Below are positions 9,101 through 40,360 of a stretch of DNA of 64,000 nucleotides, piece by piece. The notes beneath the pieces are model-generated. The model had not been told where the DNA came from, searched no databases, and was given only the letters and a program-made list of their open reading frames with translations. Where the stretch lies: positions 3,472,480-3,536,479 of the forward strand of contig OZ316898.1 of the NCBI GenBank assembly GCA_973895155.1. Direction: 5' to 3'. How positions within the stretch are numbered: the first letter of the stretch is position 1; each line of letters starts with the position of its first letter. Both the position numbers and the translations under genes were made by a program. This DNA comes from Marsupella aquatica (taxonomy: Eukaryota; Plantae; Marchantiophyta).

Positions 9101-9201
9101 AGAAGGAGCCTGCTGCAGACGGCACAGATCATGCAGACCCTGAAATTGCAGAGGCAAATAGAATCCGTGCCTCATTGGGGCTGAAACCGCTCCGGGTATG
9201 A
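6167..9201 (+). CDS. PRP38: Pre-mRNA-splicing factor 38 (PRP38A-like) with an RD/RS-rich C-terminus. Exons 6167-6296, 6875-7034, 7284-7405, 7920-8010, 8134-8263, 8416-8492, 8679-9201
   Basis: [54 protein letters not shown]...[41 protein letters not shown]; C-terminal [19 protein letters not shown]; GT-AG introns keep the frame. Confidence 0.96.
6273..6720. repeat. Tandem duplication (~238-bp period) of the PRP38 exon 1/intron 1 junction
   Basis: ggagcaatgcttcggtctcaccg|gtacggta (6273) versus ggagaaatgcttcggtcttagcg|gtacagta (6511), followed by matching intron sequence. Confidence 0.85.
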
Positions 9202-9956: not shown

Positions 9957-10411
9957 TGACCTGGATCCACCAGGGAGCATCCTTTATAGAAGACTTGTAC
10001 TACCGGTAGCATTGTGAAGGAGACATTAATAGAAGATTTCTACTAAAATTGTGGAGGAGACGGTTAGAGAAGATTTGTACTAAAATTGAGGAGACAATTA
10101 AAGAAGATTTGTACTAAAATTGTGGAAGAGACTGGCATAATAGAGGACACATTGGAATGTGGAGAAAAACTCCAACTTGGCACACTTCCTCCATAGAGTG
10201 GTGGCTTGAAGGGACTGTATCTTTAAACCACCACTCTCCATATAAAAGGAGAAGTGTCCAAGACTCATCACTTTTTCACATTGCTCTCCTCTAGCATGAG
10301 ACTTTGCTCCACAATTTTAGGAAAAGTATACTAAAAATGGTGAAACCTGGTGTAACCAGGTTTTGTCATAGACAGTGGCGCTTTAAAGCAAAACCTGGTG
10401 GATCCAGGTCA
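9957..10411. mobile_element. MITE-like element with perfect 18-bp terminal inverted repeats
   Basis: TGACCTGGATCCACCAGG at 9957-9974 and CCTGGTGGATCCAGGTCA at 10394-10411; internal ~35-bp tandem repeats. The right end is locally re-duplicated (10502, 10603). No clear TSD. Confidence 0.6.
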
Positions 10412-12066: not shown

Positions 12067-15000
12067 ATGGAGGAAGAGGATGATGAGGCAGCAGAGGAGG
12101 AGATGCTGTTCTGTGATGACATCGACAGCTCTGCACTCTCTGGCCCAGCTGGAGAAGAGGGCTCGGCTCCGGCGCAGGATTTATTAGAGGATTCGAGAGT
12201 TGATCTGATTGGTGGCACCAATGGAGGAGGACGAGGAGTGGGCGGACGCTGTGGCGCCCCTGGAGGTCCGCTGGCCGTTCCCGGGTTTGTGTCAGGGCGC
12301 ATCAATGTCCAGGATTTCCAAGAGTCCTGCAGCTCTCTTCTATCGGTGGGTTCAACTTTTATTTTTCCTCCCGCTCTGTCGAATTGAGGATGATTCGCTG
12401 TGGATGATAAGCTTGGGAGTTCTTCAGTTGGCCTACATTTTTGTTGAAATTCTAAGGCTGCAATTCCAGCCCCAAAACCCTAAACCCCAAATCCTGCAGC
12501 TCTCTCTTTTATCGGTGAGTTAATTCTCAATATTTTTTTTCCTCCGGACCATGTCGAATTGGGGATGATTGTGCGTGTGAATTCTTCAAGTGGCCTACAG
12601 TTTTGTTAAAGTTCTAATGCTACAATTCCTAACCTAGACGCGAAACCCCACGTCCTCCAGCTCTCTTTGTCGCTGAGTGAATATTTTTCTCCACCTCCTC
12701 ATTATGTCGAATTGAGGTGATTCACTACGGACGATAAGCTCGGGATCGATTTCTATTGAAATTCGAAGGCTTCAATTCCTAGCCTAAAACCCTAAACCCT
12801 AAGACCTGCAGCTCTCTTGGATCAGTGAGTGAATTGTTTAATTTTATTTTCTCCTGAATATGTCGCATGGAGGATGATGCATTGTGCATGATGAGCTGGG
12901 CGCTCTTCAATTGGCCTACATTTTCGGTGAAATTCTAAGGCTGCAATTGCTACCACGGTATAGGAGCAATGGACTGTTGTTCTTTTGTTTTTTGGATCTG
13001 ACTCTCTCAGTGTGTTGGGAACATCTGTATGCTGATGGCGATGACTTTGTTCACGTGGCAGGCAGTGAAAGCAGAGCTAAATGATATTTCAATTGAAGAT
13101 GACAACGTTGATGTTTCGTGAGTTCCCTCCCGTTGATTCCTCTGCTGTCAGGAAATTTTTAGGGGGCTTGGTGTCCGTCCATGTTTCCAATCACAACTGG
13201 ATGATCTATACAAGTAAAGGGAACAAAGATTCTGATCTTGCAGCTTTCCCTTTTGGCTATACTTCCGTCACAGTATGCTTCTTGAAGAGTCGTTTCTTAT
13301 ATATCATTCTCTTGTGACTTACTTCCAAGATATGAAATTAATCAGTTTTTTCTGTGTTCCTGACATGATCAGATTTGCTTGTGTTGCTGATTTCTAGTTA
13401 CGGAATGGATATTAAGGTTTTGTGCTTATCTCGTGGCAGGATTGATGATCTTAAGATTATGACAGATTCTGTTCTAGTTGAGAAAGCATTGGCTGAAATA
13501 CTTGAGGTACACCATGACTTGTTTAACCGTTGTACTCTCAGTTTCTACGGTTTTTTACGTTCTTGTACTGAAGGTCCCTCGCCCATCCTTAAGAATCAAT
13601 GGACTGTCAACTCGAATTAATCCAATTCTTAGAGTCATTTTTCATGTGAATGCTCAGAAATTCCAGTTAGTAAAGTTTGACTGTTCTCTTGTCCAGGGAC
13701 AGGATTCCCTTTCAAGATTAGCTATTGTGCCTACCGGGAACCCGGGACAAGGAGAGCAAAGCATTGGTAAGCATATATTGTAATATCCTGAGCTATGCCT
13801 CTGAACTTCTGTTGTGGTATCTAGACGCATCACTCATATTGAGGATGTAATTGTCTTAATCTCCTAATCGATCCTCCATTTTCCATGTAAGATTCCGAAG
13901 GATGGCCTGTATGTTTTATATGGACTATTTCATGATGAAGGTCTGTTTGGATTTGGGTTTAGTGCAAGGTTGATATAGTGGGTTGCCAAAGCAGAAGATG
14001 CCCAAGCGGACCACCTACAGATGAACTCGACATATGATGTGCGGTCTGAGGAACTGAGAGAAAGTGAGGAGCAAGAGTCACACGCCATAGGCAGTGGAAG
14101 CAGGAAACAGGAGTTCAACTTCTCAGTACCACCAAAGACTGGAAAGAAGCGAGGGAGGCCTTTTGACCGAGACCGACGAGCTGCGCAGCTGATGGTATTG
14201 ATTAAATGGTGTATTAAAAATTTAGCAACCGATCTAATTTCATTACAGAGGGAATGCTAAGGCCGTGCAGAGACTTCTAGCTGCTTCACTAGAATATAGA
14301 TCAAATAGAGAGGGTACTGTCTGCTCCTTTTCACGCCTTTTTGTTGTCGCCAAGCAGGACATCACAGATGCCAGACGCAAGGAAGCTTTGACAAGAATGA
14401 AGAAAGAGAGGGACGATGCTCGAGAGAAGGCTCCTCTGCATAGTTTAAGGTAGTTCATGTCTAATCTTGATTTACAAGCTGACAAATGTCCTCCTTCTAG
14501 TCCTTGTTAAGCTTTCAACCTGTAGACTAGTGGGGGTTGAGGCTGCAACCTTTACGTCTCTGAGGGTGCAAAAAAGAGGGCAACGGTGAGAACTGTGGCG
14601 TTGACATTTCCTGCGTCCAATCTGTATCGTAGGGCGAAGAAGGAGCGTGAGGGACTCTATGCCAGGGATCACAGACCTCTACGAACTCTCAAGTTTCTCA
14701 ACTCTATCTTGAAGGTCAGCACGAATTCTCAGAGAAGTTTTTGTAGATATTTCTGAGAAGATCCCTTTGCGGAGTTTGGTGTTAACGTAGGGAGGTGAAA
14801 TGAAAACAATCTCATTTGAACAATAATCTGATCCTTTCATCTGTTTTGATCGCTTCCCAACTGCAAGAAATGCTGACTGACAGCTGAAAATGCTCTATGG
14901 TATGCCTATGGTAGACACCTAAGTTTGCATCCAAGGAGGACTTTAAGCCCATGAATGAGGGAGAAGTACTTCTCACGGTGGAGATATACGACAACATGAA

Positions 15001-21121: not shown

Positions 21122-23959
21122 TTACAAGTCACTGGCTGCAGTGACGGTCTGTACACCATTGCGAACAAGCTGGCACGAGTCTCTCCAAAATTCGTGAGAA
21201 ACAAAAAACCCAACGCATGCCGACACGGCTCCCATGAGAAAGACGCATGCAAAACTTTTCCTGAAGCCACTCCTCTTCTCCCTGCTTTGTCGATCCTCGA
21301 GACCTATTTCATCTATTCTTCCCCGAGGTTCTTCCAAAACTCGATTGTTGGCTTCCTTCGAATTGTCGTAGCAATCACAAACGGTTGATTGCACGTGAGG
21401 CTTACTACTGACATTATCACAGGAGCAGGAGATGGTCACAGCATTTACATGAATTGAGCCGATGCCTGGAGGAAGCTCCTTGTAGCCCTTGATATGGAAC
21501 ACAGCAGTCACAGATTTCTGGTTATCAACATCTGAAACAGAAGATTTCATCGATGGTTGGTCTAAGTCGGCCACTTGCTTCTTGACTTCCTTGTCGTTCA
21601 CATCATTGTCAGAAGTGTCAGGCAAACCAGGCTCGCATAACGTTGCAGGCGGTGCTAATTGAGAACATGATTGCAAATCCGATGAATTTGACACCACTGG
21701 AATGGTTTCAGATGGTTCTTGAGTTCCCACATTTTCCACTTCACTTTCGAGCACTACTGCAGCACTAGAAGCCTGTGGCAAAACAGCCGAGAGAGCAAAG
21801 ATAGGTCAGGTTACAGCAACCTCCACACATGACCAAAAATTCATCAACACATTTATCTTTCAAATTATCACCAAGAGCCGAATGCTGAGTAAAACACGAA
21901 ATCGCCCTGTACAAGTCATGGTTTTGTAAGCAGCCAAAGAAATCTTACATCAGCTAGACGTACACCGTCAGCACTCACTGGTGTCTTGTCAGGCACAACC
22001 TCCGTTGACCCTGCCACCATATTCTGAGTATGTTCTGAGCTTTCATGCTCCTCATCCTCTTCAACGGGGGGTTGAGGCCGATTGCTCTTCTTCATCAGAA
22101 CTCTACGCCTAGCTGTGAAAGTCGGAGCAACCCGTCCAGCTTGGGACTTGAAAGACGACGGAATTCTAGGCCGGATCTGTATCGTTGCAAGTTGGCGAGA
22201 ATCAATGCTGCCGCATGACTCTTCGAAGCTGGAAGACGGTAGCATGGTAGGACTGGGTGACCGGTCTTCCAAAGGAGGAGGTAAGTCCAAGTCTTCAAAA
22301 CCTTCACCTCCCATCACAGGCTGCACGGACATCTGCGTGCCAACAGGATCTTCGTACTTGACACTCCATGGAGCGTCTGACGGAAAGTTGCCAGCAAATG
22401 TTGGCTCCTGCAGCCAGCCACCTTTCGAGAACTCACTACGCCCATCCGGTGTCGAGTCCTGAAGGGGAATGGGAATGAAGTCTGGCGGCTCGTTAATAAA
22501 CAGACCATCCATCCAATCATAATTACTACTTTCCATCTGCACACAGAAACAACCACCATACATGGTCAGCGACGCCAGCTAGAAATCAGAGCTCCATGGA
22601 AATGTCCACACAGGTGTATCAAGCACTGTAAAGAACCGCAAAAGCGTTACTGTGAAGTGCACAACATTTAGGTAACGATACGAGCGCGAGGCACAAAAAA
22701 CGTGACAGAATAAAGAGATGCACAGATACACACCCCCTCCAGCGTACTGTACCGTCAGGCTCCGTCATACGGATCGTCCGTAAAGCATGCGTTCACGTCA
22801 CCCACCCAACACAAATCGTATACAACACTTCTCCACCTCGTCTTTTCTGGCTGGCACATTGTGCCGCTAAACTGTTTTTTGTTTTTTTTTGTTTTTCCAT
22901 AGTACATCGCTTTCCTCTCAGCGTATCGAATCAGGTCACCTGCAACAACTTCGAGTCCTGACTCAAGAATCAAAAAAATCGTGTTACCTTCGGGAAATTT
23001 GACATGCCGTCGACGTCGAAGATGCTAAGCGGCGGTTCACCACTCGAGGGCTGCATCGCAGGGAAAGAAGGCAGAGGCAAAGCCTCCAGCACCTGGTCAC
23101 CAAGCGAGACGGCACTCTGGGGAGCCTGTTGAGTACCAGAGGAAGGCATCGGCAACGGAGGCAATTCTGTGCTTGGCTTCACGTTGTATTCGTAGAACAC
23201 CGAATTCTTGTCATCCGACGGTGAGTCCGCGTTGTCCACCTCCTCGCCCGAACCAACCCCGGCAAGAGGCGGCAGATCCAACCCATTCTTCTTGAACACC
23301 CTGCATAGCACATATGCTTCCTGGAAGAAGGAGACCACCCAAAACGAACCCAAGAGCCGAGTCAACTTTTGCACAAACGATGACAAGCCTACCTAACAGT
23401 CTGTCCATAGACACGTCCACACACCCCACATGCAGAAAGTAATGAAATTCACTCGACTAGACGGTAAGAGAGTATGCAGCAGAGATGAGAAGGAATTGTT
23501 CAATCTAGACAGACAGATGGTTACCTGTGAAACGGTGGTGGCTTCCCACTCATCCCCATCGAGGCGATACTCGTGCATGAGCCAGTGCGTGCGCTCCCCA
23601 TGAGGAGCACGGCCTAGGTAGAACACAAGCGTTTTCTTCATGCCGATGGTCTTGGAGCCCGTCTTCACGAATCGATCACGCCCGGTTGCCTTCCAGTACC
23701 CAGCCTCTGTAGCCCGATTGGTACGCGCCCCATTGGGATACTTCCTGTCCCTGGGGCTGAAGAAAAACCACTCAAAATCATGGGTAGGAAGCCGAGACTT
23801 CGAAGGCAAATCCCATGGCTCACACTTGTAAAGATCTACGTCCGCTACCACGTCAAATTCAATCGGGGCTCCTTTCACTCTCTTCCTCAAATAGTACGCC
23901 ACCAGCTCCTCGTCGGTGGGATGGAACCTGAATCCTGGAGGTAACATCACTCCGGGCAT
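21122..23959 (-). CDS. NAC-domain transcription factor with a C-terminal transmembrane anchor (NTL type). Exons approx 23959-23525, 23320-22988, 22536-21949, 21774-21122
   Basis: [91 protein letters not shown]. Hydrophobic tail [20 protein letters not shown] preceded by basic residues. The start codon and a possible extra small exon are uncertain. Confidence 0.92.
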
Positions 23960-24979
23960 AACTATGCACGCATCCTCTGTTTCAGCCTGCAATCCACCTC
24001 TTTCCTCGCCCCCTTTCCTCTGCCGTATTTCCGTTCACCAGATCGGCAATTGCCCAATTCGATGAACAAGTCCCGCACCAATTGTTCCACGCTCGTCCTC
24101 GAACCCTAAACTCGTTCAGGCCACAAACTCCAACTTACAGAACAACACCTCAAGCAACGACTGATCTGAGGCACCCAATTTCGTGAAACGATCCCAGCCA
24201 AATTGCTCCAAAAAGAGAACTAGTGGGAACCCTAAACTTCGTCCGTCTCCAATCGATACACGGCCCAAAACAACTTACGGAGAACTATGGTCCTCAAAGC
24301 GGCTGCTGCTATGAACAAGTGGTCTCCGCTTCGGTTGGGCAACAATAAATCGATCAACCAGTCAAATCAATCCCCCACCGATACTCCCGGAGAAGATAGT
24401 CTCACAGCGCGGTCGTAGAATCGGTCGGCACGAAGCGCTTCTACTTGCAAACCCGAGATAAAACATGGACTGATTGAAGCTAGATTCACGCTGAAGTCAC
24501 CCTTATACGCGGACTCGCATTCTTCGACACGGTAGAGAAGGTGCGAAGGGACGACGCTACTTCTGCGATCTGAGCTGGTCCGCTCTCGTCAGTCTCATCT
24601 CCTCTCCTCTCTGTTTCTGTTCGGATCTACTGTAGACTCTGAAAAAGTGCTGAAGATCTAGAATGAGTGACCTCGGTGAAACTGATGATGGGGCAGAAGA
24701 GCATGGGACCCCGCGACTTTTCTTTCGCTGAGTGAAATCAGATTCGAGTGCTCCGCGGATGGCTATGGAGGTCGAGGGGGATCCTTCGCGACAAGTGTAC
24801 TCTGCCTTCATCGCGACTCCAGTAGCAAATCTTGCTTCAACACGACTCTACTCTCGTGCCGAATCCATTGGTCGTAACGCGTCACCGGGTCTTTTTTTAA
24901 TTTATTGAGGTGGCGGGTGAGAAGCCGCTCTGGCGCGCTCTCATTGGCCCGGGTACGATGGTGACGACTTTCATGGAAA

Positions 24980-25288
24980 TAACTTCTGTACCAAACAAAG
25001 GTTACTACAGTAGGTTACTGGTCGGTAACCATTTCTAGTCCATTTCTAGTCCATTTCTAGTCCATGGGGTGTGCTCATAGTTTGGTGCCCTTAAAATTTT
25101 TGCAGTTGGATGACCTTTTGGGGGACAAAATTCAAACACGGAAACCAATGTCTAGGCTACCGTAGGTTGGAGTTCTGGATTATAAGACCTTGAGCCCGGA
25201 GTGTTCTTTGCAGGTTTGCCTGTCCTCACATTCCGGACCCAGGGTTAGAGTCTAGTAACTCCACCCTACACCTAGATTCTCCTTGACG
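24980..25288. repeat. Unit 1 of a ~260-300 bp repeat family starting with a lox/att-like palindromic site (TAACTTCTG-TACCAAA-CAAAGGTTA, 24980-25004)
   Basis: Homologous to the units at 29060, 29340 and 29598. Shared blocks include gttggatgacc.ttt.ggggacaaaa, aaccaatgtctagg and cacctagatt. Confidence 0.8.
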
Positions 25289-25369
25289 TAAACAGGGTTT
25301 AGTCTTTAGTTTATCTGTGTATCCACTTTTCCGTGGTATATGTTATTTCCCGTAATCTTTGCCCCAAAT

Positions 25370-25565
25370 TGACGGTCACATTGTAATCTGTTTGTGGGAC
25401 CAACGGTAAGCTGTAATTTGGGGATGGGATCAACGGTAAGCTGTAATCTGGGGATGAGATCAACGGTAAGCCATAATTTAGGGACGGTAGATTGTAATCA
25501 CTTGACGGTAACTTGTAATCTAGCTACGGTGACATATAATCCAGCAACGGTAAACTATGTGATCT
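25370..25565. repeat. About eight tandem copies of an ACGGTAA-nnn-GTAAT-like motif (21-30 bp period)
   Basis: caacggtaagctgtaat at 25401 and 25431, a variant at 25461, and shorter variants at 25371, 25483, 25504, 25526, 25547. Confidence 0.8.
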
Positions 25566-25922
25566 ACCGACAACATTCATCTCCAGCAGCCAATTGATGC
25601 AATTCTCTGTTTTTAATTTTCTTGTTTGCATAGTTCAACACAACTGGCTGACAATAGCATAGCGACTGCATGAGAGAGATCCATGCCCGACATCCATGAC
25701 TCCATTCAAAATTCACAAAAGAGAGAAGCTTCATTATGTAAAATGCCAATTTCTTGAAATGAACTGGGCATGTGAACCCATGAAAATGTTACACCCGAAA
25801 AAATAGTACATCCGACATATTGTTCAGCTGAAGGTTCGATTCAGCTAGTGAAATGCACATGACTTTAGTCTAATCTCTACTATCCTAAAAAATTGCCTAC
25901 GTGGTCTGCTACTATTCTACTT

Positions 25923-28281
25923 CTAAGCATCGTCATCCTTTTTCACTATGAAATTGATCGTGCAATTGTTATAGTTTCCACATAAACTGTTCCCCACCGA
26001 TACACTCTTTGCCTTAGACTTGGCTGCAAAATAACCAGCTAGAGTCGGATTCTTGCTCAATTCCCCAACATAGTCGACTTCATCAAACGTCTTATTCCAC
26101 TCAATAACACGTTTATTCTGCTCGTCTGTCAAGATAGTCCCATCATTTGATACGCTCTTAGATTTCTGTAAGAAAAAACAACTTACATATGTTAAATTTA
26201 GATCATCTGAAAACAAGATTGCACGTAAAAAGCGACAGTGAAAAACCAGAGAAGACATGTACATAGTACTAACTTGAACTTCGATCTTGATCTCCACATC
26301 CTCATCTGCTTTTGAAGATTGGCCCGTATCCTATAATCAGAGTGTGCACATAAAACAAATCAACAAACAAATCACAAATCAACAAACATAAATGACTGAA
26401 ACATTATGCACAAGTACATACCTTAGTCAATTCTGGACTGATCGCTACTTGAAGGTTACGCTGTACACTGACTCTATCAATGAGAGGGTTCAATGCTACA
26501 CCACTCCCTGCCACCTTCTCACTGTAGAACTGCTTAGAAACCTCCGTTAGAGCTTTCTCGTAACTCAAGTTAGAGTTACATCCCACTAAGGTTGCAGCGT
26601 CCTGCTTAAGATCTTGGGTCCTATCATATCTCAAGTATCCACTAGTCGTGTGGTGCCCGGTCACAAGCATGCCAACTTCGTCAGGAACGCCTTTTGCTGC
26701 CATACGCGTTATTAGAGTCGCCCGACCACTCTTATTAGTAAACAAATCTTTAGGAAGCCCTACCAGCTGTAACATGTTATTGAGCATATGCCCTGTGCGA
26801 TCCTGTGCTACTTTGTGGCATTTGTTATACCAAACATTCCCTGCAGGGTTAGTAATAGGTTGCATGACAAGATCCTGCTTCTTGCATTCCTGGGCTGGAG
26901 CCATATGACGTAGATACTGTTTCACGCAAAGAATGAAATCAGCCTCGAAGCTGTGGAAAGCGTTACGAAATTGGTGTTCTGAATATCGGTCCAATGTCAT
27001 GCTGTTATTCTTCGATTCTCTTTCTTCGAATCTGTAAATCAAAAAAACTCTCAAAAGATTAGCAATTACTGACTATTGTTGAAAGATTACGCAAGTCCCG
27101 TGTCTACAGCTGCGACAAGGGTTGAGGACATTATTTCAGCCATATGACGGAAACATGGGTGGAACAAATACAGAAATTTACAGGGGCCATTACCGCACGT
27201 ATTCTTTCCCCTCTTTCGTACTCTCCACGCGTATGTCATTCCTCTGCAAGAGCCAGAGCTCTTTACCACCCCGGATCCCTAGACGACACAAGAAGTAAAA
27301 TGCCAGACGTTTCTGGCAGCCATGTGCACTACTAATCTGGTGATCAATGTTGGCTAGTATTGCTTGCTCCATCTCCTCCGTAATGGTCTCTACCTGCATT
27401 ACATAAACAAACAATGAATAACGTCAATCTTGAACACTAATAAATTCAAACACAAAGAAACACAAAAGCAACAGAAATAACATTGTACACACCTTCTTCC
27501 GTTTCTTATTTTTGCCTTCTCGAGAAGCTTTCTTGATAGCAGCCCGCAAGACCATACGTGTCTTTGAAAAGGCAACATGTGTTTTAATGTTAAATGTTGT
27601 TGTGTCGATTAGATTCCCTTCCCCTCTAAGAGATCTAAGTTCACTTGACCGTTTGATTAACCGGTTGAATCCATTGCACATGTTCATCAAGGTAGCACTG
27701 GGGTAATCTTGGCCATTCACTTTCACTGCCCTACTAAACAAATCGCTGAATAGCTCATCCAGGAGTTGCAATGATAGGTCGCCGAGGGATACAGACATAT
27801 CCCACCCCTTAGCTGCCCGAAGAGAGTTTGCTCATTTCAGAGCCCACTGATCGTTACGTTCTGAAGCTTGCCTCTCCTCACCTTTACCAGCATCATGAAG
27901 CGTCTTATCTGGAACCGCCCTTAAGCCTGGTATGGTAACTTCCAAAGATGACACTTCCCCCTGAGGTCCGACATTATCTATGGCCACATGAACAGGATGA
28001 CTACCAGGAACTTCACAAGCAACAGGAGCATCATCCTCGCTCTCAGCATGAGGAAAATTACTAAGAGTATTGCACACAAACGAATCATCAACAAGACTTT
28101 CTAGACTAGGCAGCTGAAGGTCCTCAATTTCATCAAAAAATAAAAAGTCATTCTCGTCTTCCTCTCCATCTTCGGGACTCACTCCAATTACAGCCCCCTG
28201 GCATTCTGTCATCTCGACTTGCAAAGACGCAGTGATTATTGAAAATGAGGTCAGCGGATATAAACTATCAAGGTCCGTCAT
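25923..28281 (-). pseudogene. Spliced Crypton/DUF3504-type tyrosine recombinase with one premature TGA. Exons approx 28281(or 28212)-27493, 27393-27194, 27031-26422, 26330-26274, 26165-25923
   Basis: N-terminal core-binding-like LDELFSDLFSRAVKVNGQDYPSATLMNMCNGFNRLI. Catalytic motifs LGIRGGKE (R), ESKNN (K), FTNKSGRAT (K/H-x-x-R), LVTGH (H), GYLRYD (Y). C-terminal NNCTINF motif. Four GT-AG introns with compatible phases; in-frame TGA at 27832-27834. Confidence 0.85.
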
Positions 28282-29059
28282 AGCAAAGACCTCTAAACCG
28301 AAATGCAAGGAACATTCCGCATGTATAAAGGACCTGTCCATCTTGAACGCAACGTAAGTTGTCCCTGCTGATTTCCCCGCTCGTCCGTTTGAAATCCTGT
28401 CACACACAGAGGATCAATGAGCAGCGCCTGTCCACTTGCGTGCAAACTAATCCCTGGATAAGAAATTTCAAAATAAAGAAAACACAACCGCGCCATTGAA
28501 TCGGTTTGAATGACAACATCCCACAACAAAGAATCACAGCTCAACATTAACACCATCAACAAAAATCAGAGCAGAAATCAGTAGCTCCCGCGCCCTCCCA
28601 AGAAAGCAAAAGTTGAATCCGTCGAATAAGCGTCTTCGTCAGAAATCCAATTGATTTGAATGGCAGCATCCCATAGCAACGAAATGGCAATTGATTTGAA
28701 TGGCAGCATCCCATAGCATCCCATCGCCATCAACAACACGCGATCAGAGCAAAGCTCAGTAGCTCTAGCGCCCTCCCCCGCAAGTGCAATCCGTCGAATG
28801 AGCACTTTCATCAACTTTGCATTGTATTTACGTTTGATGCGCCGCTCCCATTGGCTGCACTGGTGATTGCCGGTAAACTGCAGACTAAAACCTGATTACG
28901 CACGTTAATCAGGATTTAGCACCCCTGTTACCGGGATTAACCGGGGCTCACAAGTTACTCCCGACACGCTCCCGGCTTCCGCCGGTCGCGGGTCGGTCGT
29001 AACTTGGTCGCCCCGTTACTCCCTGGTAACAGGCGACTAAAGCCTGATTATCCTATACA

Positions 29060-29840
29060 TAACTTTTGTACCAAACAAAGGTTACTAGTAAGTAACAATT
29101 TATATTACATGCGGCTATTCTCCGTAACTTTGTGCCCCTAAATTTCGAGTTGGATGACCATTTTGGGGACAAAAAGTGAGCACAAAAACCAATGTCTAGG
29201 TTTGGGTTCTGGTCATAACCTTGGAACCAGATATTTGAAAATGCTTGCCGATTGCCACCCATCAGTCTGCCCCCTCATTCCAAACTCAGGTCACAGCCTA
29301 CTGTGGTAACCCTTGCCCACACGTCGATTACTCTAGATGTAACTTTTGTGCAGAACAAGGTTACCAGTGGGAAACCGATTCTAGTCCATACTCATATTCT
29401 CAAAATCTTGTACTTAAAATTTATAGTCTGGTACTTTTAAGGGAAAACTTTGCACACCAAAGTTGATGTTTGAGGGGTTCTGGTCTAGAACCTTGTAACC
29501 AGAATATTTGAAAAGGCCTGCTAGTTGCTGGTTCTCACATTTGGGACACATTGTACAACCTTGTGAATCCTGCCCATACTTCTGTTATTCTAATAGGGAA
29601 CTTTTGTATGGAACAAAGGTTATGAGTGGGTCACCATTTCTGTTCCTTGTTGCTAGTCTCATGGGCTCGTGCTATAAAGTTTTTAGTTGGTAATGTACTT
29701 CCAGACCACAACCCACATGAACCTCTGTTCCGAAAGGGATATGTTTAGCCTAGAACCCTGTGTCTTGAATGTGAGAACAAGACCGACCAATGGTTTATGA
29801 ACAGCTGGCCCACACCTAGATTATCCTATGCATCCACCAA
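29060..29840. repeat. Units 2-4 of the palindromic-site repeat array (sites at 29060-29084, 29340-29363, 29598-29622)
   Basis: TAACTTTTG-TACCAAA-CAAAGGTTA; TAACTTTTG-TGCAGAA-CAAGGTTA; GAACTTTTG-TATGGAA-CAAAGGTTA. Each is followed by homologous unit sequence. Confidence 0.8.
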
Positions 29841-30636
29841 GAAGGGTAGCAATCCCACACCCTCCCAAGTCCATCTTGTGTGGATTTACTGACGGTGGTC
29901 AACTCAACCGCCACTATCCATTTCTAAAACTATAGGACATTATAGTATAGTATAACTAGCCCAATGTCTGTGCGTTGCACTAAAGACGTTGAGATGAGAA
30001 AAGATATGGAGATGAGCAAGAAGAGAAACCATGGCCAGGTGAGAAAAATATGTAACAATCAAAAACAGGCAAGGAGAGAAAGAGAGTGAAGGAAAGAAGT
30101 TGTGATGAGATAAATATGTCAAGGTGAGAAAAGGGTGGCAAGCTGAGAAAAAGATGATAAGAAATCAATGTGAGAAAATGTCGAGGTGAGATAAAGATGT
30201 TAATGTGAAAAAAAATGTCAAGATGAGAAAACAATGTCAAGGTAAAGTTGTTGAGGAGAGATAAATATGTAAAGATTAGCCCAATGCTTGTGCGTTGCAC
30301 AAAAGATGTTGAGGTGAAAAAATATGTCAAGGTGAAGAAAAGATATCAATGTCAAAAAGTTCACGATGAGAGAAAAAGATGTCAATATGAAGAAAACATG
30401 TTGGTGTGAAAAAAGTTGTTGATGTCGTGACATATAGTATCGTAGTCATAGTGTATCGAAAACATACAAAGCACTGGCAATGCACATGTGCAAGCTGCTA
30501 GCAACCAACATGCATAGAAAAAGTCTCATCACATTTACAAGTGCCAAGAAAAAGCAAATGAGGTGGTATGTACGTAGTGGAGGTGTAAACCTTTGTATCC
30601 CCCCAGACCACAGCCAAAAGGAGGGCTGAAGAAAAT

Positions 30637-30800
30637 TCAGGTAGCATGCGAAGCACAGGAAGGGCAAAACCATAACCCTTCTGGCACCTGGGTAAGTTCA
30701 GGCCGAAGGCAGAAAAGATGGTACCCTCCATTGCAATTGTCACACAGCAGCATCTGGTCAGCATCGTCAATTCGCAAACATACTTTGCAAGGGTAGTCCA
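30637..30800 (-). pseudogene. PHD finger at the integrase C-terminus
   Basis: CKVC...LLCDNCNGGYHLFC...VPEGLWFCPSC is a C4HC3 pattern with the conserved W. Confidence 0.92.
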
Positions 30801-32120
30801 TAGGTGGAATCCAGGTAGAAGTCACAATGGTGGGATCCAGGTTAGGTAGATGACAAGGGGCGCAATTCTTGGCATTATCAGCAATTATGCGCCCATCTGC
30901 CCCTTGTAACTCTAGCACTCCAGACGGTCGAATAGCTTTAACCCTGAGAATAGTACGACTAGTAGAGGTGTCCAGGGTGTCGTTAGCTTGCCGTTGCAAG
31001 TACACAAAATCTCCCACATCAAACTTCCTGACCTTGGGCTGAAAAGTGCCCCCTCGTGTGTGTGCATAACGCAGTGTGTCTCTGTGCTGTGCAATGGCCA
31101 AATTCTCCATGGCCATGGGCATAACCCTCCTGAATAGGGCAGCCCTCTCGGAGATCACATCAGACCAAGTCACAGCTAAATCCAAGTCCACCACCTAAAG
31201 CATGTGAGCAGCAATAGCAGAAGGTGGAATTGGGTGACGACCAAACAGCAAGAAGTAGGGAGAAAAGTTAGACAGTGATGCATGTCTAGACATCCTATAC
31301 CCCATGGCAATGTAGGGAAGGCCAGGTCCCAATCCTCCTTGTTTTTGGTGAGGCAGATGTTCCAAAGGCCCTTCTTGCATGTCTGAACCATGCGCTCTGC
31401 CAAGCCATCTGCCTGTGGGTGATCTCGTGATGTCCGGCGATGATCAATGAGGGCCTGATCAAGCAGCTCCTGGAACTCTCCTCTAAACTTTGAGCCCTGG
31501 TCAGTGAGACATTGTGCACAAGCTCCAAAGTGACTGAGAACTTGTTGCAGGAATGCATGGCTGGTGCTACGGGAGGTCTTATCCGGCAATGCCACAAGTT
31601 CTGTCCACTTGGAGAAATGCTCTATCATGATCATGATGTAGAGATTACCCCGAGATGTGAGGGGCAATTCTCCAGCCAAATCACATGACCAATGATAAAA
31701 CATGCCCTGAATAGGGAGTGGATGAAGTGTGGGTTGCCGAGATGTGAAAGAAGTCCTTACCCTATCACACTGCTCACACCGGGCAATAACATCTCGAACC
31801 TGGCCATGCATGCCTCTCCAATGATAATGGGGGACCAAGAGGCTATAAGTCCTCTTAACACCAAAATGACCAAGCTCATAATGTACCTTACGGATAAGGC
31901 CAACCCTCTCATGAATGGGTGGAACCACCACTTCCCTGTCTGGCAAGCAGCGCACAAGATGATCTCCCTTCCACAAGTAGCGCTTGGACCTTTGCTGAAT
32001 TCGGTCTCTCTGGGCAGCGGTAACATGGGTGGGGTACTCCCCATGCTGCAGAAATCTCAGAGTGTCGTTGTCCCCCCATATGTCTACCACAGGTTGGTCA
32101 ACAACGTAGCATGGCAGCAA
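30800..32120 (-). pseudogene. Retroviral-type DDE integrase (frameshifted)
   Basis: HYELGHFG...CEQC zinc-binding HHCC; WSCDL, LTDQG, DGLAERMV; C-terminal FDVGDFVYL. Confidence 0.93.
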
Positions 32121-32199
32121 AGCAAGATAAGTAGATGTATGAAATGTAGGCAGGATGGAAACCTGGTCAAAATCCTGCCGTGCATCTGAGGAATCATCA

Positions 32200-33620
32200 G
32201 AGGCAATCTAAGGGCTACGGGACATAGTGTCAGCATTTTGATGTGTCACACCAGGCCTATGAATTACCTCAAAATCATACTCCTAGAGTATGAGCGCCCA
32301 ATGAGCAAGCTTGCCAGTAAGCTTGTCGTTGGTCATCAACCACTTCAAGGGCTGGTGGTCGGTGTAGAGAACAAACCTGGTCCCATAGAGGTAGGGCCTG
32401 TAATGTATGACAGCCCACACAACAGCAAGGCATTCACCCTCATAAGAAGAATGATGAATCTCTGCCTGATTGTTGCTCCTGGATGCATAGGCAATGACGT
32501 ACTCTTTACCTTCCTCATCATGCTGGCCCAGAATGGCACCAATCCCAAGGGCACTCCAATCTGTGTGTAACACAAAGACCTTGCTGAAATCAGGTCTTCT
32601 TAGCACCGGGTATTCTGAGAGCTTCTCCTTCAAAGCGGCAAATGCTGCCTCAGCATCTGTACTCCATGTCCAAGTCACATTCTTTTTTAACAAAGCATAC
32701 AATGGGTGTGCAATGGAGCTGAAATCTTTGATGTAGATCCGGTAATAATTGCACAACCCAATAAAACTCCTCAAAGTGTGAACATCGGTAGGAGTCTGCG
32801 GGCATTTCCAAGATGGATACCACCTTGGCCCAGTGAGCCATGGTTCCATTTGGAAGAATGCGGTGCCCAAGGTATACTATTGATCTGACAACAAATTCAC
32901 ACTTCTTGGGGTGTATCTTTAGGTTCACCTTCTTAAGCCTCATGAATAGCTCCTCAAGGTCAAGTAGATGTTGGTCAAATCCTTTGTTGTGGACCAACAC
33001 TCATCAATGTAGCATTTCAGAAACTCAACACCTTGAAGAACCTGGTCCATGACTCTTTGAAAGAATATGGGCGCATTCTTCAAGCCAAATGGCATCACCA
33101 ACCACTCCCATAGTTGGTTACTACCATGGAAAGTTGTTTTCTTGCGGTCCTTTGTAAGCAACAAAATCTGGTTAAAGCCTTGCCTTAGATCCACAAGAGT
33201 GAAGATGTCTGAGTCTCCAATGCTGTCAAATAGCTCTTCTGGCCGCGGCATGGTACCTGTCCTGGGGTGTGACCAGGTTCAATGGCCTGTAGTCTCCACA
33301 CATGCGCTTCTCTGTCCACAATCCACTGGAATCCTTCTTTGCTGGCATCACTGTAGCTGCTGCAAAATCTGATGTAGATGGCTGAATAAGACCAGCTTCA
33401 TAGAGCTCTTGGCACCGTCCTCTCATCCACCAGTTGCCACTCATGCTTACTCAAACGGTGTCTTTGGCTAAAGATAGGTGTTTCATCAGCCAACTCAATG
33501 GAGAACTGCATGGTCTTGCACTTACCCAAGTCTTTCATAGAGAAAGCAAACACGTTCTCATGCTTGAGGAGCAAATTCAACAACTGGTCCTTCTGTCTTT
33601 TACTCAGGTGGTTGCCCATG
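32200..33620 (-). pseudogene. Reverse transcriptase and RNase H (several frameshifts and stops)
   Basis: KRMCGDYRPLN, DLRQGFNQI, VMPFGLKNAP, CYID, KKCEF, YLGH, RSFIGLCNYYR, LHTDWSALGIGAILGQ, YASR, EGECLAVVWAV, LYTDHQPL. Confidence 0.95.
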
Positions 33621-33703
33621 ATGAATGTATAGTTGGCAACACTAGGAATAGGACCTGATGTACTCGTGCTTGAAGAGCCAGAAGTGCCAGCCTCTCCATT
33701 GTC

Positions 33704-33990
33704 CTCGAGGGGTTAATTAAGTGTATATTTTGGGGTACCACGTGCGATCCTAGCATAATATAAATAGACCTATTTTATAAAGAAAATATTCCAAAAATAT
33801 TCTTCATTTTCAATATTAATAACCTATTTTACTTTATAAAAGGTATATATTAGAGAATATTCTATAAACATAAGTTTCTAATACCTTCTTTTGCCTCCCA
33901 CGTTTTTAAAAAATTTAGTTAATTTCTAGCAAAAATACATATTTTGGATCGCACGTGGTTCCTAAGATTTTTGATAGTCAACCCCCCGAG
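33704..33990. mobile_element. 287-bp MITE with 8-bp TSD (hAT-like TSD length), copy 1
   Basis: TIRs CTCGAGGGGTTAA / TCAACCCCCCGAG; TSD CCATTGTC at 33696-33703 and 33991-33998; AT-rich interior; second copy at 52195. Confidence 0.92.
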
Positions 33991-34269
33991 CCATTGTCCA
34001 AGCTGCTAGCATGCTGTTGATAAGGTGATGCGGCCTCTCCAAGGCCTATTGTATCTATTACTCTGGTCTGATCCACACCATGAAACTCAGAAATAATATC
34101 AGCCACATTACAAGGGACCTCCTCCCCCTAACACTTGGACTGAAGCAGTGAGTGTTGAATAGAGGTAAGTGCACTTGGTCTGGATGCCATGTAGCAGCAC
34201 CATGGAGTGGTAGGGCTGGAACTCCTGATGCTGGATGAATGGACATCTGAAAAAGCTAGGATGCAAGTG

Positions 34270-35205
34270 ACCAGAAGCCAAGTGAGAGCATTAAGATCCA
34301 TTACCCTGCCAAGTAAAGCATTCCTGGCTAGCCTCGTGATTTTGGTGTGGCCTGTAGTATCGGGTTGGAAGCCCATAGCCCGTTCTCTCTCCTCAGGACT
34401 AGGTTCATCCCATGTACCAATAGAATGTCAATAAACCAGGCCAGGACCATCACCCTTAAAAGCATGTGCACCTGGAAAGGACACAAATGTAGGCCAAGCA
34501 ACACGGGGCTGTCCAATGGTATTGGCTGGATACCAAGGTGCTGGCTCTTGCCGTGTAACTGATTGGCAAGAATTGTAAGGATCCAAAATCTGGTCCACTA
34601 TGAGGTTAGTGTCCCTGGATGTGTGGTGAAGAGCTAACTCCAGCAAGGAAGGTGGTGCAAGGTTAGTCCAAAAGTTACGAAGACGATGTGCATAAGAACC
34701 ACAATGCACTGCATCAATGAGAAGGGGTGGTCCCAAGTAGTGCTGGACCACACTGAAAATCCTCTTTGACCTATGGACGCTGGTCAAACTGAGATGGGGT
34801 ATTCTCAATGATATAACCAACAGCGAGGTAAAGGGATTGAGCCCAGGTGAGAACCTGAACCAATGCTGTGAAAAGGCCAGAATGAGAATCATGCAATCCA
34901 ACACCGTGACCAGCAGCTGAAAACCCTTGGCATTCCCAACTAGCTATGATAAAATCAAGGGAGCTAAGTGCCGGTGTTGGACAAGCTGGATATCTGGAGG
35001 GAAGAAAGAAAATGTAGACTTCCATGAACTATGTGGAAACTACTGGGGAAATTGCTCTGAAAATTCCAACAGACGGGATTCAGCCACTTGCCTTGCACCT
35101 GGATCAATGTCCACGTAGATGTATTGCTTCACCACCATGCCAGACAGTAGGAGAGCTTCCAGGCCTGTAGAAATGCCACCAAAAAGCTCAAGCAATGTAA
35201 GGCCA
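34270..35205 (-). pseudogene. C5 cytosine DNA methyltransferase domain inside the retroelement polyprotein, between protease and RT
   Basis: Motif I LELFGGISTGLEAL; II YVDID; IV LDFIIASWECQGFSAAG (catalytic Cys kept); V DSHSGLF; VI YIIENT; VIII DAVHCGSYAHRLRNFWTN; IX EPSPEERERAMGF; X LLGRVMD. All are in canonical order across three frames. Confidence 0.9.
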
Positions 35206-35539
35206 TCCGGAGGAGGAGTCCATGTAACTGGTGCGCTCAAGATTGGGGCTATTGGTTGTCCATTGTGCTGCCCAAGGTCCTCAAATTTGTGTAATGCAGC
35301 CACCAAAGGTCCATGGGCTGCTTGGAGCCGTTGTACCACCTCTGGTTGATGATCCACGTTGATGGAAAGTGCTGCTATATGTGTAGCAGCATGTGTAGCA
35401 ACCACCTCATCATCATCCTCCTCAATCCAATCCTGCAATGGGTGGTTGATGGAGGTAGCTGTGTGCACTGCTTTCAACACACAGTGGTGAGCCATAGGTG
35501 TATGAGCACCATGCAAATCAAGTGGAATATAGCCCAAGT

Positions 35540-35900
35540 GTGAGCCATCCGTATGCCAATCAACTCTATAGTATGCATGCTCATGCCAGTTGTCAATGGT
35601 AAAACCTGGTGGGAACAAAGCCTCCTGGCCAATGAGCATATCATACGTAGTGGCATTGGTAACTAAACATCTGACTGGGAAATGCAATTCCTGATCTGTA
35701 CCTCCATTAAAAGTGAGAGTGAGTAAAGTAGAACTCTCACCCAGCACATCCTCCACAGTGCCACTAGCAGTCCGAATGTGTCACCTGGATTGTTGTAAAT
35801 GATCAGTCAGCAGTCTCATCTTCTTGGCAAACTGAATGCCCAATATCACTGGTTGAGCGCCTGTGTCTAGCATGACCACCTGAGGAGTGTGACCCTCCAA
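35540..35900 (-). pseudogene. Retropepsin-like aspartic protease
   Basis: VVMLDTGAQPVILG and YDMLIGQEAL. Confidence 0.85.
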
Positions 35901-38318
35901 CTTGACCGCCGAATTCCTGTTGTCAACAATGGCAATGGTGGTGGAAACTAAAGTCTTGTCGCTAGGCACCACTTTTGGCAAATGATGAGGTACCTTGTGA
36001 AGGGAGTTAGTGTCCACAATCTTTCCACTCAACAGCATAGCCAAGAAAGATGGAGCAGCATGACCAGAATCAAGTGTAGCTCTAGTCACACAATCTGCAG
36101 CAATACTATCATCTCTACCACTAGAAATTGGTACTGGTATAGCCAAACCAGTGGAAGCATGTAATGGAGAAGAAGAAAGTCCAGTATGTATAGGAGATTG
36201 GACCTCCAAAACCGGTGGCATAGGGGCTGATGAAGAATGCAGTGAGCCCTCTAGCGCTCTCATGACAACTCTAGCATCCAGCTGTAAGTCATGGCAACTG
36301 AAAAGTGGAATTGTAAGAATCCTTTGTGCCATATCGGAGGTGAAATGCTCAAGCAGCTCAGGAGAAACAACTCCATGTGAAATATCAGCAGCACCTGGTG
36401 GAATGGATGTAGTTGCAGCTCCCTCCCCCCTCGCCAACAAGGTGCGCTCTTCAGCAAGCGTGAGTGGCTGAAAAGATTGGGGCATGACAGCCCAAGCTCC
36501 CCTAGCTCTAGTCATAGGATCGGCAGCAAGACCATCAGCCTGTACAATGCGGCGTGTGGGAACAGTACGGGAGGCAGCACTAGCCTGCTGGTAAGCAAGA
36601 TAGGATGGGCAGAATGAATCTGAAAATTCTGCTGTAAGGCCAGGCTGTGTAGCAGAGGACAACACACATTCACCCATATGAGCATCAAATGGCAAGCCAT
36701 AGAAAGAGCGAGGTAGAGGTTCTGAACTATCAGTGGTGCCTGGGCCAGGGATGGGTTGCACGTGACCAGCTGGTTGAGAAGGACCAGCAGAGGCAGTTGA
36801 CTTGCCTTTGATGTGGGCAAGTTGGGCACGTAGGGACTCAACCTCATGAGTCAGAGATTGGAGTTGAGTTGCCTGTGCGTTGTGAGCCTCCTTCTGAGCT
36901 GGTTGCTTCTGTTGCTGCTTGGGCGATTTGTTGGCACCGGGTGCTTTGCCACTTGAAGGAGGAGCAACTGAGGCAATAGAAGTCCTCCTAGCTGGTGGGG
37001 GAGTGAAAGTAGGAAGAGGATGAGGGGCCTGCTGTCTTAGCTGCTTCCTCTCTGGGAATTTGGCAAAACAAACTGCCTCCAAGTGACCCACTTTCCCGCA
37101 AAAATCACAAGATAGGTCCTCAGCAACAATATCACATTCATTAGCCTTGTGATTGGGTTACCACAGTAGTTGCAAGATGGTAGCATAAAAGCAGCATGGG
37201 CTGGCTTGGTCTTGGAACCATACTGTGGCACATGGGAAGGGGTGGCCAGTGTAGGGGCAGCAGCCTGGTACCTGGATCGCGATGGACGCGCAATACTGGC
37301 CTCATAATGTGCATGGGCCAACTCAAGTTTCTCAGCAGTGTCATAGACATTAAGCAGGGTGTAGCTATCTCCAAACTCTGAGAATACTTGCTGCAACACT
37401 TGCCAATGGAGAGTTGGTGTGCCCTCCAATGCGCGAAGATAGCGATGAGCAGCTTCCAGGTCAGTGATGCTCTGGGTGTCCTCCTACAGCTTGAGAAGCC
37501 GGCGATACATCATCTTTAATGTTTCATCGCGCTGCCTCACAAAGGTGGCCAACTGCATGATTTTGTCAGCACTCTTGATTGGGAATTCCAATTCAAGAAC
37601 CTGGAAAAACTCAGCCACTGGATCAGCAAAGGCAGGGGAATCAATGGTGGGAGAAATGCCTGATGTAGCTTGTGCCAAGACAGTGGGAGTAACTGGTGTA
37701 GTGGTGGGAATTGGAGTAGGAGGGGATATATGTGGCAGGAGCAGCAACATGGGCTGCAATGGCATTCTGTAATGCCAGTTGTAAGGCAGCCGCAATTGCA
37801 GTGGCATAGGCAGGGTTAGGCAATTGTGTGACAGCAAGCAGCCATTGAGAATGCTGCTCATACACATCCAAAGCCTCGTGGTGCACATACCTGGCTAGCT
37901 ACTTAAATGCAAAAGCATTTGTGAAATTGCTGCCATACTTCAACTCCAATTCATAAATGACAATGTAGAAAGTGGATTTGAACTCACGCAAAGAAATAGT
38001 GCCTGGCCGCCTGCTGAAGCGTTTAATGCGTCTAGATGAGTGGCTAACGTCCATGCTGTATGTTGGTGAAGTAGGAACAACCACGGATGCAGAAGGGGTA
38101 AATGGCAATGAAGTTATAACAGGCTTTGGAGTAGTGGTGAAGCGACCGGCAAATTGAGCAGAAGGATTGCGTGGTGTGGGTGCTATTGCTGTTTGCGGAC
38201 GTCGTTGAAATTGCCGAGATTCCAATGAAATTGGCACCAATGGTCGTGGATCACTCCGTAAATGGTACCTGGGTGTCGGTGGCGATGTGCTGCTACCTCC
38301 CGGCTTGTCTGCTGACAT
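35900..38318 (-). pseudogene. Gag-like region with two CCHC zinc knuckles (~37066-37174)
   Basis: CNYCGNPxHKANEC (frameshifted) and CDFCGKVGHLEAVC; RQRDETLKMMYRRL MHR-like segment; probable ATG at 38318. Confidence 0.8.
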
Positions 38319-38571
38319 ACTGTGTTGCAATCCCAAATGTACCGACAAGGTGCAAATGTGTAAACACATAGAAAAACTGTCACCGTAAAAAAACTGTCGG
38401 AGAAAATTTACTTTTAAAAATGCAAATTTAGCCCCTTGTGCGTGTGCTGATGTATATGCCAAATTGACCGTCTGATGAATATGCCAGGCCCTCAACTTTA
38501 TGCAGATGACACGTGGCGGCAGCAAAGAAATCCGGAAAAATGGGCCCTTAAAAACGTAAACCTAGGGCCCC

Positions 38572-40360
38572 CTTAAGTGTATACATGGGGCCCTTTCAAA
38601 TGTATAAACATGGGGCCCGGTTAAGTGTATACATCGGGCCCCGATGTGGACCCAGGAACTAGCAAGCACGACGGAAAAGAGACCGGGCGCGCGTCGGCAG
38701 CGAAATTGGCCACAAAGGAATCGGCCGAGTGTGTAAACACACTCTGGGCACGGCGCCCTATGCACAGGCAGCCTGCGGAGGCCCTATGCAAGTCGTTGCG
38801 AGGCGGAAGGAAAGACGACTGCCGAAAAGAAAAGAGAGACCCAAAAATAAAAGGCGTATTACGAGGCGAAAAGGAGGCAAGGCAAAAGAAACCGGGCCAA
38901 ACCAGGCCCCCTTAATGGCATGAGCCCTCCCATAGGGCTTCGTGCCCCACCTTAAGAGCTTCCAAAGGGAAGCTACGAGCTCCCCCTCCCCTCCTTAATG
39001 AAATTGGGCCTCGTGCCCTGGTGACAGTATTCCCCAGAGAAGGGAGCCCAGTTTGAAGTGATGGGCAACTTGCCGAGTTGCCCGGCACGTAAACTCGGCA
39101 TTTGCCAGACCAAAATGCCTCTATTTGACGCATATTCAATCTTATTCCCCGGCCCGGCCCAAACTCTTCCCGGCCTTGTCCCGGACGCTACCACCCTTCC
39201 CGGCAACCAGCCCGGCCCGGCCCGGCCCGGCCGGCCCCTCCACGGACCCGGCAACCAGCAGCTGGGGGCGGGAAGGGGCAGGCCGGATCCGGGTCCGGGT
39301 GGGAGGAGGGGAGGGGAGAGCAGGGTCCGGGTGGGGGGAGGGGAGGGGAGGAGGGGAGGGCCGGGTCCAGGTGGGGGGAGGGGAGGGGGGGGGAGGGTGA
39401 GGAGGCCTGGGTCCGGGGAGGGGAGGGGAGGGGAGGGGAGGGCCGGGCCGGGTCCAGGTGAGGGGAGGGTGAGGAGGGCCGGGTGAGGAGGGGAGGCCGG
39501 GACCGGGAGCCGGGGGATGTCCAAGCCGGGACCGCAGGCCGGGAGATGTGGGAGCAGGGACCGCCGGGGGCCGGGGGATGTGCTCGGGCCAGGACCGGGG
39601 ACCGGGGCCGGGACGGAGGAAACAAAAGGGAAACAAGACCGGGTGATGGGGCCGGGAGGTCATGGCCGGGCCAGGCCGGGACCGGGGGAGCGAGACCGGG
39701 AGAGGCCGGGTGTCGACTTGCCGGTTGACGGCCTCGGAAGGGTCTATTTGCCGGGCAAGTCCAAACCGGGGAAGGGAGTCGATGTACTCTCCCCCCTTTC
39801 TTTAATGCTGACAGTGGGCTCCGTGCCCTGCAGGGGGACTCCCGAAGAAGGGAGTCGTATGTGAACTCCTCCTCCCCCTCCTTTTAATGCAACATAGGGC
39901 CTCGTGCCCACTCCTTGCGCTCCTGCCTTGGCCTGGGGCAATAATCTACTCCCGAGTGAGGGAGTTCGAATTGTACTCCCCTTCCCTGCTTTAATTGTTG
40001 CTTAGGGCCTCGTGCCCTCTCCTGCACTCCTGCCTTGGTTCCCCCTCCTCCCTGCTTTAATTACTCCATAGGGCTTCGTGCCCTCCATCCCCTCTTGCTT
40101 GCAGGACAAAAAGTAAGGGAGTCGCTCCCCCTCCCTTGGCTGCTTTAATTGCTGGCACAAATCAAGTTGCAGCTGAAGCGAGGCAGGAGCAATAGAAGTG
40201 AGGCGAGAAAAACAGGCTCGTGGCCCTATGCAGTCGGGAAGTAGTCGCGCGCGGTGGCCGAGGCAGTCCGGTGAGGGTCATGCGGCAGCCGTGGCCGGAA
40301 ATGGCCATAAAAATTAACAAAAAAGGGGCCCGACGGGAGTGTTATGTGTATACACTTAAG
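38572..40360. other. GC/CpG-rich segment in the retroelement 5' leader, bounded by a 14-bp inverted repeat containing TTAA, with a G-run (G-quadruplex-prone) core at ~39260-39500
   Basis: CTTAAGTGTATACA at 38572-38585 and TGTATACACTTAAG at 40347-40360; dense CCGG/GGCC motifs and GGGGAGGGGAGG runs. Confidence 0.55.

Follow-up and report, generated by a model that had tools for sequence, protein, structure and literature searches.

A probable Crypton-type tyrosine recombinase element, with defined ends and an internal copy of its joined termini, in a tandem repeat of the liverwort Marsupella aquatica

We analyzed a 64,000-nucleotide stretch of the genome of the liverwort Marsupella aquatica (GenBank assembly GCA_973895155.1, contig OZ316898.1, positions 3,472,480 to 3,536,479), hereafter called the window, in which a tyrosine recombinase (YR) gene lies among four palindromic sites, each heading a direct repeat unit (U1 to U4). 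Window positions 25286-29062 are probably a Crypton-kind DNA transposon whose only gene is a YR of DUF3504/CryptonA-like type; this one decayed copy has a single TGA and probably landed in a pre-existing four-unit repeat. This mobile unit measures 3771 bp between its 6-bp direct repeats, and its ends are placed at 25286-25291 and 29057-29062 by four independent lines of evidence. The element consists of the following features.

25286-25291, minus strand: 3′ crossover core, ACGTAA on the plus strand and TTACGT in gene orientation.
29057-29062, minus strand: 5′ crossover core, ACATAA on the plus strand and TTATGT in gene orientation; palindromic site 2 has its first 3 nt within this core.
25289-25304, plus strand: terminal half-site a, TAAACAGGGTTTAGTC, at the 3′ end.
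29035-29050, minus strand: terminal half-site d, TAATCAGGCTTTAGTC, at the 5′ end.
28883-28921: internal full site, made of half-site b (28883-28898, minus strand), the 7-nt spacer CGCACGT, and half-site c (28906-28921, plus strand).
28906-29050: 5′ terminal palindrome (d arm, loop, and c arm), inverted repeat I1, a strong single-strand hairpin.
25923-28281, minus strand: YR gene, multi-exon, with a single in-frame TGA at 27829-27831.
25380-25570, minus strand: 3′ subterminal array of about eight ACGGTAAnnTGTAAT-like repeats with 30-bp and 21-bp periods, found with a tandem repeat finder.

The window copy of the gene keeps the catalytic motifs GIRGGKEL (Arg I), ERESKNN (Lys), NKSGR, TGHH (His), and YLRY (Tyr). 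NKSGR represents K-x-x-R in place of H-x-x-R, Lys standing for the first His throughout the family. The exons of the gene model were searched separately and unjoined, and the TGA was not read through. Because the five window exon open reading frames (ORFs) had no YR match in Pfam and a phmmer search of the catalytic exon against the PDB returned nothing useful, the identification had to rest on homologues. The catalytic exon retrieved relatives at 52-63% identity, and a profile search yielded 588 relatives; the named hosts are the liverwort Calypogeia fissa, the ferns Adiantum capillus-veneris and A. nelumboides, and the moss Ceratodon purpureus. No relative was found in the metagenome contigs that were scanned with the family alignment. 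Full-length homologues gave weak matches to DUF3504 and Phage_integrase, the DUF3504 (PF12012) scores of homologues P0013 and P0015 (24 and 18.5 bits) being below the curated cut-off of 29.7. The family profile matched the Crypton-derived DUF3504 domain of human QRICH1 (E = 4e-15) ahead of integrases and Xer proteins, and the Atlas neighbours of the recombinase are DUF3504 clusters. An AlphaFold model of the Calypogeia homologue is confident over residues ~240-455, and its best fold matches in the PDB (XerH, Cre/Tre, XerA, Tn1549 Int, and lambda Int) are all tyrosine recombinases. Intron positions are common across species. The assignment of the window gene to the tyrosine recombinases of the Crypton kind is supported, with a probable DUF3504/CryptonA-like affinity. 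Between the internal site and the first coding exon, the 5′ untranslated region of the element also holds direct duplications with periods of ~40 and ~175 bp (28498-28813).

The ends of the element were located from its half-sites, which in this family are of the TAATCAGG type, and from the positions at which contigs and homology end. With up to 2 mismatches, TAATCAGGNTTTAGTC has exactly four matches in the 64 kb: at 25289 on the plus strand, at 29035 on the minus strand, and in the inverted pair at 28883-28921. DNA homology to the Calypogeia locus L003 starts at 29062, where site 2 has its inner edge, and takes in a palindrome of ~190 bp. At the other end, the homology of a diverged contig from sequencing run X5 stops at 25287, ~280 bp inside unit U1, and an exact 565-nt contig from run X1 (24780-25344), which has single-copy, flank-like depth, meets a high-depth contig at 25315-25344. 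Diverged and exact contig versions of the element interior co-occur in four public runs. The depth used here, which is summed contig depth over these runs, is raised over 25288-29050, where diverged contigs are present; it was taken as a hint, the weight being placed on where contigs and homology end. Neither a reverse transcriptase (RT) nor a second transposase was found inside the element by ORF lists and Pfam (window 25286-29062 and positions 4455-10004 of the Ceratodon locus, L014). Motifs similar to the 3′ subterminal array, the repeats of which are possibly accessory binding sites, occur in L003 at 13640-13790, and GGTAAC/GTTACC motifs recur in the termini of all four element families compared below.

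Some 140 bp in from the 5′ end, the internal site repeats the joined termini in inverted form. Aligned with the joined ends, the reverse complement of the internal site scored 58 in the window, against a shuffle maximum of 28, and 84 in both L003 and L014; shuffle maxima were 28-32 over the three loci, and none of 1000 shuffles reached the real score in any of them. In the metagenome locus L008, the complementarity was seen by eye. The junction formed by the joined ends is 2 nt longer than the internal site in the window, L003, L014, and the metagenome family alike. The 5′ terminus and the internal site together make up a palindrome of ~170 bp; the 5′ palindrome has a predicted DNA fold of -55.7 kcal/mol (z = -9.7) and is 69% identical to L003 9473-9664. 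The crossover cores of the two named relatives are as follows.

L003 (Calypogeia), 9473-9478 and 13852-13857: TTACGT at both.
L014 (Ceratodon), 4455-4461 and 9998-10004: GGTTACG at both.

L008 has the same pair of terminal direct repeats as the window (5′ TTATGT, 3′ TTACGT), and those of L010 have only ACG in common. TTACG(T) stands at the element 3′ end in L003, L014, and L005-L011. Over the four families, the joined-end core consists of TTACG, then TAT or AAT, then GG, then TAAC; the arm sequences vary by species, and their arrangement is kept.

The metagenome contigs L005-L013 are 99.6-100% identical from -686 to -690 through +2957 of the gene start, and they diverge outside the element into at least 3 different flanks. 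Their homology breaks at the start of the terminal palindrome on the 5′ side and at TTACGT on the 3′ side; near-identical copies with different flanks thus fix the ends independently of the window, and this family looks recently active. Its element, a member of the same superfamily on contigs that carry P0154, is ~3.65 kb long and encodes an intact 843-amino-acid protein, with a plant LTP gene nearby. One of the contigs, L011, carries the central 40 nt of the terminal palindrome (~391-530) in inverted orientation relative to L006, L008, and L010 (39/40 to the reverse complement), between perfect 22-nt inverted arms. It is a flip-flop isomer, as would come from hairpin or cruciform processes or from recombination between the arms, and it hints that single-stranded or hairpin forms of the DNA may occur.

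The same comparisons bear on whether the recombinase could be a domesticated host gene, with the upstream palindrome acting as its promoter element. DUF3504 domains have been domesticated repeatedly in animals (PMC3212892), and in four lineages the palindrome precedes the coding region by ~450-600 bp. We nevertheless regard domestication as extremely improbable, given the nonsense codon in the window copy, the diverged extra copies in the same runs, the near-identical copies with different flanks, the retained catalytic residues, and a complementary arm at the 3′ end.

The palindromic sites had suggested quite another architecture to the first-pass annotation, namely that they are the lox-like sites of the recombinase itself, that sites 1 and 2 would excise a 4080-bp circle carrying the gene, and that the array records repeated cassette integrations in the manner of an integron. 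The sites and their units are as follows.

24980-25004: site 1, TAACTTCTG TACCAAA CAAAGGTTA, heading unit U1.
29060-29084: site 2, TAACTTTTG TACCAAA CAAAGGTTA, heading unit U2.
29340-29363: site 3, TAACTTTTG TGCAGAA CAAGGTTA, with the right arm short by one A.
29598-29622: site 4, GAACTTTTG TATGGAA CAAAGGTTA.
24966-25285: repeat unit U1, on the target side, past the element 3′ end in gene orientation (from the four-unit alignment).
29046-29845: repeat units U2-U4, with sites 2, 3, and 4 at 29060, 29340, and 29598.

What that annotation had described was confirmed. The four inverted-arm sites are present with a 9-7-9 geometry (n = 4), each at the head of a direct unit, and the pattern has 8 matches on both strands against 0.26 expected, a number that none of 100 shuffles attained; site 3 was missed by a 3-mismatch scan because of its shortened right arm. 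Sites 1 and 2 have the spacer TACCAAA in common and are exactly 4080 bp apart (29060-24980), and the multi-exon YR gene with its one in-frame TGA does lie between units 1 and 2, on the minus strand. The spacers of sites 3 and 4 differ from these and the arms are largely kept: across the four sites, 3 of 72 arm cells differ versus 6 of 28 spacer cells. The direct units, ~260-310 bp when aligned, have a mean column identity of only ~64%, and their bodies are 69-80% identical in all pairs. Among 25-column windows of the unit, the one containing the site is by far the best kept: it has 9 differences, where the median is 29.

A 9-7-9 geometry fits a YR core site, sites 1 and 2 have their spacer in common, the arms are the best-kept part of the unit, and site 2 shares its first 3 nt with the 5′ crossover core, all of which speaks for the palindromes as lox-like sites. 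The motif TAACTTYTG-N7-CAAAGGTTA, however, has no exact match in the 14 related loci, and only chance-level matches with 4 mismatches occurred in the loci scanned, so that the co-location with YR copies which the annotation had named as a test was absent in 14 of 14 loci. In four families, the ends carry a different conserved set of sites, TTAYGT with the half-sites. Both the cross-species homology and the contig homology run out within the proposed 4080-bp interval, at 29062 and 25287, respectively; the mobile unit is 3771 bp, and 4080 bp is the sum of the element and one repeat unit of 309 bp. No conserved ORF, gene, or cassette was found inside the units (ORF list). The lox-like reading is therefore largely refuted, and we hold it to be very unlikely. 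From the earlier interpretation, a YR of the Crypton/DUF3504 kind that likely acts by site-specific recombination survives; the palindromes as its sites, the 4080-bp circle, and the integron analogy do not.

Our preferred explanation, an element inserted into a pre-existing repeat, starts from the observation that the array is broken by the element precisely where U1 meets U2. The first 17 nt of U2-U4 (29046-29062) are the overlap with the element 5′ end and core, a sequence common to element and target. A similar stretch occurs at the far end of the array.

29819-29832, plus strand: unoccupied 14-mer GATTATCCTATRCA, at the outer end of U4.

This 14-mer has only two exact matches in the window, the one at 29819-29832 and the element 5′ terminus (29046-29059), and the other unit junctions are degenerate versions of it. 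From this placement, we read the copy at 29819-29832 as a putative attB-like core. The 12-mer GTATAGGATAAC, whose window counterpart is GTATAGGATAAT, is kept at the terminus of the Calypogeia element despite unrelated flanks, which indicates a core common to element and target, as in attP and attB.

Movement of the element by site-specific recombination is most likely, and it may be envisaged as follows. A circle with joined ends would form an attachment site with the core TTACGT-ATAGGATAATC, from which integration would proceed. A crossover within TTAYGT would leave the 5′ end with the target-type TTATGT and the 3′ end with the element-type TTACGT. This arrangement, target-type base 5′ and element-type base 3′, is seen in the window and in L008 and fits one reciprocal exchange 3′ of the variable base. 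The landing site would have been the junction of units 1 and 2 in a pre-existing four-unit repeat of ~260-310 bp, the junctions of which resemble the element's own attachment core; the palindromes would then be the best-kept part of the target repeat, immediately outside the crossover, rather than element ends. As for the internal site, our best guess is a second recombinase-binding site for synapsis or end-joining, like the retroelement DIRS-1's internal complementary region (ICR). Since the element has no RT, a role at the DNA level is more likely for this site, possibly in synapsis or as a splint or hairpin partner. Separately, an 18-nt direct repeat, GATCATGTGACAGKTTAC, occurs in L014 at 4443-4460 (the 5′ junction) and at 10035-10052 (30 nt beyond the 3′ junction), and the target of the moss element seems to be locally duplicated too.

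The origin of the units themselves admits an extension of this explanation, which would not exclude it: they may be a concatemer of a miniature non-autonomous relative, a ~270-bp circle with its own attachment site. The array would have arisen by repeated self-integration or rolling-circle copying, and the autonomous element would then have recombined with one of its sites. All unit junctions are similar to the core formed by the element's joined ends, and the 14-mer at 29819-29832 matches the element terminus at 13 of 14 positions. In the palindrome, moreover, the junction-proximal arm CAAAAGTTA is paired with its inverse across a 7-nt spacer, echoing the internal site, and the arms are kept far above the unit body. 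DIRS-1 is also reported to prefer insertion into its own copies (PMC7192593). We still consider such a concatemer rather doubtful, as similarity between the units and the element interior does not rise above that of shuffles, no free unit copy occurs elsewhere in the window, and the units look low-copy in the four runs, contigs across U2-U4 having flank-like depth.

The neighbourhood of the element raises one more possibility. To its left lies a host transcription factor gene, a NAM/NAC-domain ORF at 23393-23992 on the minus strand (E = 6e-49), and to its right a 19-bp satellite (AAAGATGTCAAGGTGAGAAA-like, with a TAGCCCAATG...GTGCGTTGCAC head) at 29955-30424, 40894-41474, and 62889-63382, the summed depth of which is very high in all four runs. 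Similar satellite arrays flank the Calypogeia YR element in inverted orientation (L003 8540-8650 and 15060-15780). A Gypsy element with an rve integrase and a PHD finger occupies window positions 30419-40864 on the minus strand; it has TG...CA ends and TCAA flanks and is inserted in the satellite. Its counterpart in L003 (170-6175) is colinear, ~45-60% identical at the protein level, and situated upstream of the YR element on the same strand.

One could accordingly suppose a YR retroelement of the Ngaro/PAT/DIRS type, in which the units are split direct repeats, one plus three, and the RT is supplied by the adjacent Gypsy-like pol. The one-plus-three layout looks like A1...B1-A2-B2, the window and L003 alike have a colinear Gypsy pol upstream and on the same strand, and the element has a DIRS-1-like ICR (PMC7192593). 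This supposition is highly improbable on several counts: the Gypsy element carries its own rve integrase and PHD finger, with TG...CA ends and TCAA flanks inside the 19-bp satellite; no pair of units stands out as young, all pairs being equally within the range given above; the moss and metagenome elements have neither an RT nor a Gypsy neighbour; and introns are retained at conserved positions. We rejected split direct repeats of the Ngaro/PAT form (A1=A2, B1=B2, with RT), there being no privileged pair of units and no RT, and likewise the YR gene as part of the adjacent Gypsy element, which is separate, with its own integrase and ends.

Several points weigh against a Crypton-type element in a passive target repeat. 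It is unexplained why one Gypsy family is present upstream of the YR element in the window and again in L003; none was found near the moss and metagenome YR loci, and the shared neighbour could be a coincidence or reflect a common target preference. The 18-nt flanking similarity is imperfect (12/18), and the strong conservation of the palindrome arms is not accounted for by a passive target. L004, a second Calypogeia copy, has the palindrome and no 3′ complementary arm within 10 kb, and it is probably truncated. Contigs of the four runs contained no empty allele and no circle junction (no joint within 24500-29900). The read evidence is all contig-based, and copy number in the M. aquatica genome is only suggested by it.

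The closest known systems include Cryptons of the CryptonA/DUF3504 kind, in that the element is YR-only, retains introns, has 6-bp direct repeats reflecting target microhomology, and encodes a recombinase nearest to DUF3504/QRICH1-type domains. The element has the catalytic YR set, no RT or other transposase, and short terminal direct repeats with target microhomology; mobility, seen as occurrence at several loci, is clear for the metagenome family from its near-identical copies in different flanks. Cryptons have been described as having no terminal inverted repeats and only 4-6 bp direct repeats (PMC3212892, PMC13465315); terminal repeats of CryptonA were either not found or poorly conserved (PMC3212892; Glomhopper, PMC13465315), and the ends of DUF3504/CryptonA elements are undefined in animals or fungi (PMC3212892, PMC13465315). 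The present element differs in its sharply defined ends, inverted half-sites, terminal palindrome of ~130-170 bp, and internal inverted copy of the joined ends, as well as in its hosts, which are bryophytes and ferns.

The ICR of DIRS-1 consists of two adjacent segments complementary to both extremities and is essential for that element (Malicki et al. 2020, PMC7192593; Cappello model). The Marsupella element resembles DIRS-1 in having such a region, short inverted termini, and a YR, but it lacks gag, RT, RNase H, and methyltransferase and retains introns. Its internal site adjoins the 5′ end, whereas that of DIRS-1 is near the 3′ end, and its joined ends exceed the internal site by 2 nt, whereas those of DIRS-1 are exactly complementary. 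With lambda attP x attB recombination, it has in common a core of ~14-17 nt present in element and target, hybrid sites at both ends after the crossover, and repeated subterminal motifs that could act as arm-type sites. Unlike lambda, however, it is a eukaryotic element with no known Xis or IHF-type partners, and its targets vary by copy, with only 3-6 nt in common in L010 and L003. The likeness to integrons lies in a YR beside an array of imperfect palindromes, for which a folded single-stranded substrate is conceivable; there are no gene cassettes and no attI/attC-type sites, the units are non-coding, and the recombinase is unrelated to IntI beyond the fold.

No class of eukaryotic DNA transposons is less well understood than Cryptons. 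The first-pass annotation had known of no description of its proposed architecture in land plants, and in agreement with this, we found no description of land-plant Cryptons or DUF3504 plant elements in the searched literature, the coverage of which was incomplete. No earlier account of this layout of the element ends seems to exist for plants or for Cryptons. Sequences of four liverwort and moss families reveal the ends together with the crossover core and a conserved internal complementary site, and the integron-like lox array, an attractive but wrong reading, is corrected here. We propose tentatively, and with somewhat more doubt than conviction, a Crypton lineage of bryophytes and ferns defined by a conserved attachment core of the TTACG-TAT-GG-TAAC type and a DIRS-1-style internal copy always 2 nt shorter than the junction. 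If the internal site is indeed needed for movement, ICR logic would exist in a purely DNA-borne YR element, where the site could splint single-stranded or hairpin intermediates or be a partner in a four-half-site synapse. Such elements would fill, as a missing link, the gap from Cryptons to DIRS retroelements, and they would represent a plant-native site-specific recombination system with known sites. Intact natural copies make it possible to test how Cryptons select their ends and join them, whether the DIRS-1 ICR existed before the capture of RT, and whether a plant recombinase-site pair can be used as a tool.

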